Source of the DNA: Tubulanus polymorphus
Taxonomy: Eukaryota > Animalia > Nemertea
Length of the DNA stretch: 64,000 nucleotides
Direction of reading: 5' to 3'
Assembly: GCF_964204645.1 (NCBI RefSeq)
Contig: NC_134031.1
Coordinates: 16,541,807-16,605,806 of the forward strand
Shown: piece after piece, positions 52,840 to 63,172 of the stretch
Position numbering within the stretch: position 1 is the first letter of the stretch
How the letters are laid out: the number at the start of each line of letters is the position of its first letter
Notes under the pieces: generated by a model
What the model was told of the DNA's origin: nothing
Seen by the model: only the letters and a program-made list of their open reading frames with translations
Databases searched by the model: none
Made by a program: the position numbers and the translations under genes

Positions 52840-55800
52840 TTATGTGATGTTACTGGACAGAAGTTTCCTAACGTGTTCGTATATAACGTAGCTTATACTG
52901 ACGGCCGGCGCCACTTTCAAAAAGTTGGGCGCCAAACCGCGGTATAGTCCGAAAGGTCCTTCTTCTTTCACGATCGTTTTAATCAATGACACGAAGGAAG
53001 CTTTACTGTCAACTGAAAAAGAAAAAGTAAATTCTGATTTACAATAAATTCTTATTAGAGGCCATGGGCCAGTTGCTCATAAGTTGGTTAAAGATAACTA
53101 CCGGTAACTGGTTGGTTATTTCTAACTTACTTTAGAGCAACTGGTCCCAGAACGTCCTAATTGTATAGCCTTTACGGTTCAGTTCAGCCTCTATCAACAA
53201 TTTACTAATTCTACTGTGTTCTACGTATTTTTGTAATTCTCAATTGATGCCGACATAAATATTACTATTATCATCATCATCATCATTGATTTGCTTCCAA
53301 AGTTTTGATTTAAATTTCATTCCATTTCTTCTACACCATATTTCAAACTCATAATTCACTTCATATCTCTCACCTTTAGCTTGTAATTTAGTTCTAACTA
53401 ATGCCAACGGGTAGCTAGCTAGTTGACCGCACGTACTGCTCGTCGTACCACACGCCAATAGAACCATCACCCCGGGATCGGCGTTATCCGGATGTTTGGC
53501 TATGTAATAATTTTTCAACGTCTGCGAAGAGAATTAACCGCACACATTTATTCAAATCATCGAGTAATTTGAAACTGCCACAGTACAACGTAACAGATTT
53601 CGATCAGGGGCGGATCCAGGGGGCAGTGTTTTCAATAAGAAATTAACAAGCCAGGTCCCTTTGAAGTCCCATAATATGTCACAGTCCCGGAAATGAAGGC
53701 TGTTTTGAAAAGGGGACCAGGCTCTTATTGAAAACACTGTGGGGGGTTTCTGAGGGTTCTGGAATACTGTCGAGCTTTGTCTGTGCACCTTGAAGATGCC
53801 CCTAAATCTATGGATTTGACGTAAAACTGCCATTGTTTGGCATGATTTGGTGTAGTAAGTACCCCTGAAAACCACAAATTTGACGTTAAGTGCCTTTTTT
53901 GATTTGACATAGTGCCCTCCCCCGTAATAGTGAGTGGCCTTATACAATTTGGAACCGCCCTCGAGATAGGGCCCTGTATCCACCCCTGTCGACGATTAAT
54001 TATATCTACCTCATATATAGCAAGATCAATGCCGGCGTATGGAATAATGCCGATTATATTCGGTATGTACCCGCGATAAAACACGCGTAGTCCGTCTTTT
54101 TTGTAGATTTTCTTGGCGCAGTCGAACATGCCGGTGTATTCGCCGCTTTTACGCAGCGCCAGACGCGTTTTCAGAACCTCCATCGGATAGATGATCGTCT
54201 GCGAGATCGCTCCGGCCATCGAACCCGACAGGAAACGTTCGTACAGCTGTAAATCGCGGTTGTCGTCGCCGCGAAACAATCGTTTCACCTGAAAATATAA
54301 TTATTACTCATAATTTTACGCTCCCTACTTCAACTACGGTCAACTCCGCAGAGTTCAGTCGGGTAACTCATCAAAACTCAGTCAATCGTTTAATGCCTCT
54401 TAATACGATAAGCTGGATATTCCCCAGAGACTACTGCGCATATCCCTCCACACAGTTCTTGTGGAATTACACACTTTGATTCAAAGGTGCCCACTTTCTG
54501 CAAATCTACAAATTCCCTGATTTTTTCTGATTCTTTGAGTTTACCGGGTTTTTCAGTTCAGTGGCCACCCTGCATTCCCACAACTGGAACATCGTTTATC
54601 TCGAAGCTAGTCTATAGTCTAGTTCTGATGTATTTGACTTACACAGAGTTGTTTACAACACTGAATCAGGGTCTGATCTAAGCACTCGTCCGATTGCCCG
54701 GGACAAGTATATTCTCATTAGAGCAAGTAGGCTATCGTACTTTCCACCAGGCTCATGCAAATTTAAGTGTTTATGCTTTCTTCCTACTTGATACAACGGA
54801 TGATTGCAGATGATTGTGCAGATGATTGTACAACCAATCGGACTGCCTGTATAGGGCAAGTTGATTTTTGAGGGGGCTAGCAAAATATCGGATATGCTTG
54901 CTTTCATTCCTTAGATCTGACCCCATGAATAGATGACTAGCTAGGTCGCACACGTACCTGTTCGTAAGCCATAAATTTCATGGCCGATTCGGGAGCAATT
55001 TTGATTACATTGACACCGTTGCCTCTCCACAGCGACTTCACGCCGCCTTCTCTCAACATCGATTTAAACCCGCTGTAAATACCCAGTTGATTCTTCTTGG
55101 AAGCATGAACCTGTAATAAACGTGATTTAAGAATATTAGTCATTCTTATAAGCCTACCACATGCAAGCCGAAATTGTCAACTTGGACCCTCAGTTGTTGG
55201 TTAAGTTGGACTCCATCCAGAGTTTAAGTGGTTATTTCCGATGTATGGACCAGACTACCTGGGGTCAGAGGGGAGATGGGTTCACCAAAAATAGTGGTTT
55301 TATTGAAATGAACTAAAAAATTATTCTGATTTTGAGGGAACTTCGACATTTTTTGGAGTAATCGAGCTCTTAAAAAGAATTTCAAACTTCTCTCAAATAA
55401 CAGTCGTAGTCAGGTCTGAATGAACCAAAGCCGTCGTAGGGTCTTAGATTCCGTAAATGTCTTACCTGCAGTAATACTTTCAACCGATCGAGTGGAGCTG
55501 TACACGTTCGCGACACGGCACCGGCCGACCCGCCCGCCACCAGGGAGCGCCACCACATTCCCGATTGTATCTCCTCTTGCGTGAAGTCATCGGGAACGAC
55601 GGAATTCTCACCGATATCGATGATCTAAGAGAGAAGGCGAACAAATTAACGATTTTTTATTTCGGCGAACGACATTCGTTTTCATTTCAGGAAATTTTTT
55701 CGGAACTTTATTACGAAATCGCCGCAGTACAATGTACGTACGACAGGTTTTCGTCGAACGAGTGAAAAGATCATGCACATAAAAACGAAGCGTTTGAATG

Positions 55801-61800: not shown

Positions 61801-63172
61801 TTTACGCATACAGAAATATGACCTGAAACAATGCAAATTTAGGGTACGGTAGTTCAAATCAGTTCACGGCTTAAGTTCATTTAGGGAAATTGAAAGAATG
61901 AATAACAAACCAATATAGACAACTTATAGATTATCCTACCAATCGTATGAATTAGGAAGCCTGCTCATCTATAATAACTGTAGGAATTAATTACCAGAAC
62001 TAAGAAAACAAATCATAAAATCGTTTTTAGAAAATACGGTGAAAAGTCACACATTAGAAGAGAAAGGCATAAGGAGAAAGTAATGTTAAAATCCGAGTTG
62101 CTACCCACACAACACACACACGGCAAAGTTTGTGGATAAAGTTGCGTCAAAATAATACTTCAACAACACAGGCGCAAGAACTCAAACACATGTGCTCAGA
62201 TAAGATTAAAATTAAAAAGAAATATGAAAATGAAAATACACGCTATTTTATATCATTATATAACTATGTAGATGTAAATATATATAGGATATAAGTTCTC
62301 TCTCTCCCTCTCTCTTTACCAACCTTACATGCCAGCGAGTATTTCAAATATGAATTTTTGAGTCTAAAAGAATTGCAGTTCATGAGCTAAAAGCAATCAG
62401 ATGCCAGTTAAAAATAGCCTCATCTATCTATAAGCAATCAGATGCCATTTAAAGATCATTTCAAAAGGATTTTTTATTTTTCATTTATTAGTAATTAAGA
62501 ATTTTAGAAGGTGAATCAAAATTTACGAGAAATCGGCTACGGTTAGGTGCACAGCATTCAAGCATAAGAGTAATCATCTGAATAAAGTAGGATGGAAAGA
62601 GAGAGAGAGAGCGATGGATAATTGTTTATTAATTATTATCATTATCTATTAATTGATAATTCATCGCTGTAGTAGTTATCATTGAATACTGAAGCAGGAT
62701 TGAAATATGATGACGGAAGCAGTGTAAGTAGTACCCATCCACTCCATCCAACAAGCATGCTTACTACTCAAAAAGTTTTTTTTAGTTAGAATGGTATACG
62801 CCCTCCATGCGCAAAGTGATAAACTGCTTGCTACCAATGGCTGCAGGTGAGAGTTCATTCTCAAAATCCGATGGATTAATTAACGAACGGTCTCAAAAAT
62901 ATCCAAATTTGGAAAGCAGTGCTATAAGCGAGAGCTGCGTTGAATACGAAAGGCGTTTCGAGATCGCGCAGTCAAATTGGTATAAAAAACAATTCGATCA
63001 CCATGCACAATAAGAAAAAACCGGCGTGCGGGCACCAGTCTAAATTAGAACAGTAATTCTTACTGTAGAATGCTTCCAGAACTGCACGATATCCTTGAGT
63101 GAGTTGGGAGCTAACAGAAGGAAATCGCGCCATTCGTCGAACTCGATGGTCAGGTTACCATCTTTATCCATC
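52840..63172 (-). CDS. SCaMC: Calcium-binding mitochondrial ATP-Mg/Pi carrier SCaMC (SLC25A23/24/25 family), 5'-partial; exons 63172-63064, 55624-55466, 55110-54958, 54288-54010, 53521-53374, 53012-52840
   Basis: EF-hand [14 protein letters not shown], linker [15 protein letters not shown], three carrier repeats with [32 protein letters not shown]; [17 protein letters not shown]; stop at 52840-52842. Confidence 0.95.
53066..53147. mobile_element. Internally deleted Harbinger-like MITE (GGGCCAGTT family)
   Basis: gggccagttgctc / gagcaactggtcc. Confidence 0.65.
53605..53988. mobile_element. CAGGGGCGGA MITE family member
   Basis: caggggcggatccaggg / ccctgtatccacccctg; flanks tcgat / tcgac. Confidence 0.75.
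54670..54924. mobile_element. Short TIR element
   Basis: gggtctgatctaag / cttagatctgaccc. Confidence 0.5.
56646..56657 (-). CDS. SCaMC: Candidate SCaMC microexon (12 nt, KLTV; or 9 nt, LTV)
   Basis: Long polypyrimidine tract, tttgcttttaaag|AAGCTAACGGTG|gtaaga; phase 0-0, fits between the EF-hand exon and the exon at 55624. Confidence 0.5.
56993..57107 (-). CDS. SCaMC: Second (mutually exclusive) copy of the last EF-hand exon of SCaMC
   Basis: tttttcgttgtag|[39 protein letters not shown]|gtaagc; same phases (2 in, 0 out) and clear homology to exon 63172-63064. Confidence 0.92.
57519..57774. mobile_element. hAT-like MITE
   Basis: Perfect 14-bp TIR CAGTGTTCTCCATA / TATGGAGAACACTG; no clear TSD. 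Confidence 0.7.
59355..59918 (-). CDS. SCaMC: Alternative first coding exon of SCaMC (188 codons, no EF-hands)
   Basis: ATG at 59918 with an in-frame stop upstream, 564 nt to donor AAG|gtatgt; phase 0 matches exon 55624 but not the EF-hand exon at 57107; coding-like CpG-rich composition. Confidence 0.72.
60055..60192 (-). promoter_or_regulatory. Internal SCaMC promoter: Inr, TATA, CRE, CCAAT
   Basis: Minus-strand TATAAAA 60085-60091, TCAGTA Inr-like ~30 nt downstream, palindromic TGACGTCA 60148-60155, GACCAATCAG 60184-60193. Confidence 0.72.

Follow-up and report, generated by a model that had tools for sequence, protein, structure and literature searches.

How many differently controlled versions of one transporter can a single gene supply? 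The question is raised by a 64,000-nucleotide stretch of the genome of the ribbon worm Tubulanus polymorphus (contig NC_134031.1, positions 16,541,807 to 16,605,806 of the forward strand), referred to here as the window and numbered from its first letter. Its minus strand carries a SCaMC gene (SLC25A23/24/25-type ATP-Mg/Pi carrier), for which the original prediction, made from the letters alone, proposed three incompatible routes into the first carrier exon at 55624, two through EF-hand exons (A and B) and one through a first exon devoid of EF-hands (C). All the coordinates given there for A, B, C and the first carrier exon were borne out when the sequence was checked. The reading developed below, which we consider probable, is that this one gene supplies a single transporter in several differently regulated forms: the exons for the first three EF-hands (EF1-3) are joined to either A or B, and a further form, starting with C, is driven by an internal promoter.

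The gene is an ordinary member of the SCaMC family. Its matches by name are SCaMC and SLC25A23-25, and clam SCaMC-2-like proteins share 70-72% identity with its carrier part. There is a single close copy, since in a search of 268 Mb in 77 contigs carrier exon 3 matched itself at an E value of 1e-56 and the next-best match in the genome was at 6e-10. With the SCaMC/APC proteins (SLC25A23, A24 and A25 in human, CG32103/SCaMC in the fly, Sal1p in yeast) it shares four EF-hands, an amphipathic linker helix and three carrier repeats, and by analogy the putative activity of its gated forms is ATP-Mg/Pi exchange stimulated by Ca2+.

The carrier is encoded by five exons, all on the minus strand. Exon 1, with the linker loop, helix H1 and the common acceptor, lies at 55466..55624 (Mito_carr E 1.6e-7), exon 2 at 54958..55110, exon 3 at 54010..54288 (Mito_carr E 2.4e-25), exon 4 at 53374..53521, and the coding part of exon 5, as far as its TAA, at 52840..53012 (Mito_carr E 2.5e-13). 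The first three are supported by RNA, the third of them linked through a loose end, and the last two by frame and splice sites. The three upstream exons common to the A and B forms are immediately outside the window, at 64767-64579, 64418-64292 and 64189-64102 in window-extended numbering, and are called E1, E2 and E3. They encode the loops of EF1-3, of which EF1 and EF2 are also matched by Pfam; E2 holds the conserved E88 of the ERD clasp in an HEK motif, and E3 ends in phase 2. The fourth EF-hand (EF4) of the N-terminal domain is contributed by A or B.

Two EF4 exons and the routes into the carrier

Exon A (63064..63172, minus strand; 109 nucleotides, 36 amino acids) and exon B (56993..57107, minus strand; 115 nucleotides, 38 amino acids) are two copies of one exon, with a phase-2 start and a phase-0 end, and were assigned by homology and splice sites, with an RNA joint in addition for B. 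Residues 135-170 of human SCaMC-1 are matched by A at an E value of 5e-8 and by B at 3e-12, and the exon encodes the counterpart of human residues 134-170. The match upholds their description as EF-hand exons in so far as each encodes the loop and exit helix of EF4 together with the locking pin, but neither is a whole EF-hand module. In human APC1 the stretch 134-170 includes the pocket-1 cap (L152/F153), two residues of the ERD clasp (R148/D149) and, at 159-167, the amphipathic helix that serves as the locking pin (PMC6283063). Whichever of A and B is used would be expected to supply the EF4 loop, the pocket-1 cap residues, half of the ERD clasp and the entire amphipathic pin. The swap would alter the part that couples Ca2+ binding to carrier release, probably shifting the activation threshold or the leak, and a different Ca2+ response of the A and B forms is predicted from their sequences.

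Both exons are framed AG-exon-GTAAG, start one base ahead of an ATG and end ACA/GTAAG. Scored with a profile built without them, A gave 71.6 bits and B 71.2 bits; as far as sequence comparison goes, their similarity to SCaMC is not due to chance. The EF4 Ca2+ ligands at loop positions 1, 3, 5, 9 and 12 are kept in both, and the loops differ at positions 5 (N or T), 7 (T or R) and 9 (E or D). The cap is LL or IY, the clasp RD in A and RE in B, and the lengths differ by two residues. The pin differs along its length, with residues 159-167 conserved or conservatively changed in each copy. At the D149 position of the clasp, 85 of 88 distinct sequences have D, and B has E. Different codons are used at 8 of the 13 amino acids common to A and B, and the A-B similarity score is 96, compared to means of 130 (A) and 118 (B) against arthropod and clam homologs. 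In B the AG acceptor is kept at the homologous phase-2 position. Because the EF4 ligands are intact, the profile scores equal and 8 of 13 codons different, the pair reads as an old, intact tandem duplication of which both copies have been maintained, with B apparently the faster-evolving.

The two copies are 6 kb apart and their flanking sequences are not homologous to each other. An inverted-repeat search around A and B for docking/selector RNA pairing gave only short repeats at chance level, none of them long and convincing. Rfam gave no match. Descent of A and B from an ancient pair, A insect-like and B chelicerate-like, was considered and set aside: a tree on 37 columns neither resolved the branching nor dated the duplication, and a single A+B clade was not rejected (approximately unbiased test, p-AU 0.11).

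The phases leave only certain combinations productive. Joined models have open frames of 474 amino acids (E1-3, A and carrier), 476 amino acids (E1-3, B and carrier) and 491 amino acids (C and carrier). Wrong combinations are non-productive because the phases shift the frame to early stops, at amino acid 184 with A and B together, 183 with neither and 201 with C followed by B. Transcripts from the upstream promoter would then have to splice EF1-3 to A or to B, both or neither being out of frame. As originally stated, A and C end in phase 0 and B starts in phase 2; the phases do not, however, enforce exclusivity, as double inclusion is not blocked but only frameshifted, and its products are probably bound for nonsense-mediated decay.

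Four sequencing runs were aligned to positions 54850-60350 (5.5 kb). Run X2 contained spliced RNA, X3 and X4 were unspliced and DNA-like, and X5 gave no matches. Three joints were seen in the X2 contigs, carrier exon 1 to carrier exon 2, C to carrier exon 1 (59355 to 55624) and B to carrier exon 1 (56993 to 55624), so that 55624 is reached by at least two expressed routes, and the condition named in the original prediction for its refutation, a single expressed route, does not hold. Of the three routes proposed, those from B and C were thus seen directly; that from A was reached indirectly, through the geometry of a contig break. The contigs were built with 31-letter words, and the 28 carrier letters at the end of the C contig agree with the same rule. 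The B contig carries 27 carrier letters, not 30, and therefore points to a sister path starting with TGT and then a letter other than G. The end of exon A reads TGTA on the plus strand, which fits that path and argues, indirectly, that the A-to-carrier joint is expressed. Contigs show presence and not absence, and because depths are per-contig means the isoforms were not ranked by depth.

Several observations weigh against the pairing of EF1-3 with either A or B. The RNA evidence is from one sample, as contigs only, and exon A lies outside the aligned 5.5 kb. Two differently Ca2+-tuned carriers, as first proposed, require splicing from E3 to B, and in the X2 contigs no such joint, nor any loose end, is listed at the B acceptor, 57107. 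The B contig instead runs on unspliced upstream from 57107 to 57637 (530 nucleotides), where it breaks at a dispersed repeat. Exon B is also a long branch, with the non-consensus E in its clasp and one extra residue. The unspliced contig may be nascent RNA from which a rare E3-to-B link was pruned, or it may reflect use of B from another start site. Splicing of E3 to B, we infer, probably does occur.

The other start site defines a rival reading, which we judge unlikely. B would be no partner of EF1-3 but the coding start, or the second exon, of transcripts beginning between C and B. The product, EF4, pin and carrier, would be 341 amino acids long from B's own ATG and would resemble human delta1-155, which retains the pin and is constitutively inactive (PMC5369052); it would be locked off or otherwise regulated. 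The sole B contig being unspliced to 57637 fits such a start, as do more unspliced X2 contigs reaching 58939, the ATG in good context that opens B and the CpG-rich stretch just upstream. There are also precedents: insect and crab models beginning at the EF4 methionine exist, and models from three decapods (Homarus, Portunus and Scylla) have alternative first exons, located in the EF3-EF4 intron, that are joined to the EF4 exon, which makes for internal promoters within the sensor part, as in the worm. The decapods differ from the worm in retaining the pin and in having a single EF4 exon. On the other side, 15 ATGs lie upstream in 57602-57147, and similar unspliced intron contigs, possibly nascent RNA, are present elsewhere in the gene. 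A short, low-level E3-to-B link is moreover the type of path that contig cleaning drops, and an EF4 loop lacking EF3 and its entering helix would give no reason for B to have kept all its Ca2+ ligands and an exact phase-2 acceptor. Among the decapods, the Scylla SCaMC gene (L047:10995-17037) has three alternative first exons leading into its EF4 exon, one of them conserved in Portunus and Homarus, and its pin-keeping products without EF1-3 are predicted to be locked.

Exon C and its promoter

Exon C (59355..60058, minus strand) is an alternative first exon. It comprises an ATG-free leader and an orphan open reading frame of 188 codons, 564 nucleotides from the ATG at 59918 to the phase-0 donor at 59355. 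That it is a 5'-terminal exon, with its own internal promoter, spliced to the shared carrier exon follows from the joint given above and from the X2 contig, which starts at 59985 and shows neither loose 5' letters nor a 5' joint; no X2 contig was found on 60002-60350, a region covered by the DNA runs. The exact start, near 60058, is predicted only. Upstream of it on the minus strand are a TATA box (TATAAAA, 60091-60085) with an initiator-like TCAGTA about 30 nucleotides downstream (60060-60055), the two spanning 60055..60091, a putative palindromic cAMP response element (CRE; TGACGTCA, 60148..60155), the sole perfect one within the window, and a putative CCAAT box in reverse orientation (60186..60190), all identified as motif matches. 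From this CCAAT/CRE/TATA promoter, exon C would go straight to the carrier, removing all the EF-hands and the pin and leaving a carrier without its Ca2+ gate. The motif suggests that transcription may determine how much of the C form is made, possibly by way of cAMP/CREB.

The reading frame of exon C looks coding, because it runs for 188 codons, its third-position G+C content (0.58) is similar to that of the other coding exons, and of the indel alleles the one inside the frame is of 6 nucleotides and the one in the leader of 2. The encoded protein has no Pfam family, no Atlas match and one copy in the genome. Two repeat-rich proteins returned by a large protein search were rejected as compositional matches.

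The C form is without EF-hands and without the locking pin, and its junction with the carrier corresponds to human T170/G171. Human delta1-171 transports ATP, below the wild-type rate, and has lost the Ca2+-dependent stability shift; the drop in its uptake in EGTA was attributed to free ATP, which is a poor substrate (PMC5369052). As the junction falls almost exactly at the start of this active construct, that the C form is an ungated carrier is a well-based inference, provided the 188 amino acids do not interfere. Of the Ca2+-independent carrier that was predicted, the EF-less form is thus present in RNA, and its independence of Ca2+ is argued by analogy to delta1-171 (PMC5369052). The reduced activity of that construct, and its lower uptake in EGTA (PMC5369052), speak against so simple an account, as does the prospect that a 188-residue N-terminus could bring its own control.

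In the form that takes this furthest, the C form is not simply Ca2+-independent, its N-terminus retargeting, anchoring or inhibiting the carrier or placing it under a kinase. Such a role would be compatible with what is proposed for A and B, and it seems to us improbable. The extension is long, 188 amino acids without relatives compared to 10-50 in most of the EF-less N-termini of insects. It is acidic, with seven cysteines and an RxRxxS (Akt-type) motif at residues 177-182, 7 residues ahead of the junction. An engineered EF-less fly SCaMC hardly rescued male fertility (PMC6095617), so an EF-less form is no substitute for the gated one. However, the extension has no family or relative and no detected transmembrane segment or EF loop, its single-sequence fold was not confident (predicted local distance difference test score, pLDDT, 40), and 4 of 7 allelic changes in its reading frame alter amino acids, suggesting weak constraint.

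Introns and other features of the window

The intron between B and the carrier holds a candidate microexon on the minus strand (56657/56654-56646), of 12 nucleotides (KLTV) or 9 (LTV) through an NAGNAG acceptor, with a long pyrimidine tract, a TGC near the AG and a GTAAG donor. It has the features of exons of the enhancer-of-microexons (eMIC) type, namely a length of 3-27 nucleotides, preservation of the frame, UGC near the acceptor and a long pyrimidine tract, and such a site arose in 1.7% of intron shuffles. It was not seen in the single RNA run, X2, and the DNA runs also have holes at the site. The microexon is plausible on sequence grounds, and as a neural-type exon it may add length to the linker that connects the pin with the carrier. 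Exons dependent on eMIC/SRRM3-4 are known in SCaMC genes, DmeEX0001718 (45 nucleotides, CG32103) in the fly and MmuEX0042866 (36 nucleotides) in the mouse (PMC8797185). The fly exon closely precedes the first carrier exon, with its acceptor at 3L:12405160, 138 nucleotides from the R308 site. The worm candidate fits the eMIC code (PMC8797185) through its TGC near the acceptor and its long pyrimidine tract, but is shorter, at 9-12 nucleotides, and unrelated in sequence.

Other short exons may be present in this part of the family. The EF4-to-carrier introns of the clams Ruditapes and Mercenaria hold an unannotated 15-nucleotide AG-to-GT microexon candidate (approximately L007:20193-20207 and L008:23509-23523), the sole conserved block between the two introns there (E 1e-7), which starts with AAG like the candidate in the worm. 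A weak 9-nucleotide microexon-like candidate lies in the E3-to-A intron (63989-63997, minus strand), and insect and lobster models have a 2-amino-acid insert at the EF3/EF4 exon junction (P0239, P0345).

The repeat at which the unspliced B contig breaks occupies 57560..57775 in the C-to-B intron, is about 215 bp long and has about 40 scored copies in the genome. It resembles a miniature inverted-repeat transposable element, with two 14-nucleotide segments near its ends (57519-57532 and 57761-57774) that form a perfect inverted pair. A CpG-rich, island-like stretch between C and B, at 57850-57950, is without an open reading frame and is a possible start site or regulatory element. Elsewhere in the window, an open reading frame of 302 amino acids (44859-45767, minus strand) ends in a CPICADK motif, which looks like a nuclear-receptor zinc finger beginning behind a long N-terminal exon. 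Another, of 195 amino acids (47367-47954, plus strand), has a hydrophobic leader and a cysteine pattern recalling the mannose-6-phosphate-receptor-homology domain, with no good Pfam match.

Comparison with other animals

Clams and arthropods have the same EF4 exon borders as the worm gene, and the EF4/pin exon, present twice in the worm, occurs once in all 8 of the named SCaMC/APC genes checked. No second EF4 exon was found between EF3 and the carrier in Ruditapes, Mercenaria, Centruroides, Nymphon, Pollicipes, Thrips, Drosophila nasuta or Scylla, or in three metagenome loci. The comparison took in no other ribbon worm, named annelid, gastropod or brachiopod, so that calling the duplication lineage-restricted means only that it is not in these. 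The proposal that B is a redundant duplicate in slow decay, spliced non-productively at a low level while only A and C matter, could draw on this absence from the 8 genes of other phyla, on B's long branch, non-consensus clasp residue and insertion, and on the unspliced 5' side in RNA, but is very unlikely given a donor used in RNA and a copy heavily diverged from A at synonymous positions that has nevertheless kept its frame, both splice sites, all the core residues and a profile score equal to A's.

EF-less first exons and a cassette exon, in contrast to the duplicated exon, are already modelled elsewhere. Dozens of insect RefSeq models, from flies, mosquitoes, beetles, thrips and leafhoppers, have an EF-less N-terminus that meets the carrier part where the worm's does, before the first carrier exon. 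So does a salmon SCaMC-2-B X2 model (P0037), and the contrast originally drawn with vertebrates, which were held to achieve such diversification with paralogs, is consequently only partial. In the EF4-to-carrier intron of Thrips palmi (L045:5745-16848) lie three distinct first exons without EF-hands, arranged as in the worm, and Drosophila nasuta has one EF-less first exon followed by a cassette exon between the EF4 exon and the carrier, again in that order. The insect isoforms are database models, and no functional paper on them was found. The likeness of the paralog SLC25A41/SCaMC-3L to the worm C form is that it is an EF-less carrier, and it is Ca2+-independent (PMC6283063).

Two side observations concern the gene models used. 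In clam SCaMC models (P0287, P0322-P0326), EF1 and EF2 are separated by short cassette exons rich in histidine, one or two in number. At the Centruroides locus (L009:45467-75354) the first two carrier exons each have a second copy with an identical score; this is probably a duplication in the assembly, which makes the 565-amino-acid model too long.

Tandem either-or exons and internal promoters are common. The closest parallel to A and B is alpha-actinin (ACTN1/ACTN4; PMC9741552), in which homologous either-or tandem exons swap part of an EF-hand. There, however, one copy loses Ca2+ binding, whereas in the worm the ligands of both loops are intact and the inhibitory pin is exchanged along with the loop. 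In the text and those supplements of that paper that were examined (PMC9741552) SCaMC genes are absent, the sole SLC25 gene being SLC25A3. Our literature search, which most subscription papers lay outside, found no report on mutually exclusive exons or a microexon in SCaMC genes, on SCaMC-2b, or on a doubled EF4/pin exon. As far as tested, what is new is a duplicated SCaMC exon carrying EF4 and the locking pin together; the EF-less first exon is already known from public models of many animals, as is a neural cassette at this place from the fly (PMC8797185).

In its fullest version the scheme would comprise two Ca2+-gated carriers that differ in EF4/pin pair and in threshold, a permanently active carrier from the CRE promoter, a pin-locked carrier from B without EF1-3, and tissue-specific patterns; that all of these hold together is unlikely. 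If the locked B form were real, the pin-keeping truncated isoforms of decapods would represent a second, independent origin of a locked form, and the worm gene, with that form included, would offer a ready-made set of natural variants for testing the locking-pin model. Truncated SCaMC isoforms, both EF-less and pin-keeping ones, are widespread among the gene models of arthropods; no paper on what they do was found. The Ca2+ threshold differs about a thousandfold among the yeast, plant and human carriers (PMC6283063). Because the swapped exon carries the last Ca2+ loop together with the pin, and the C junction is close to that of delta1-171, the natural isoforms of this gene could be used to test how the sequence of the pin sets that threshold.

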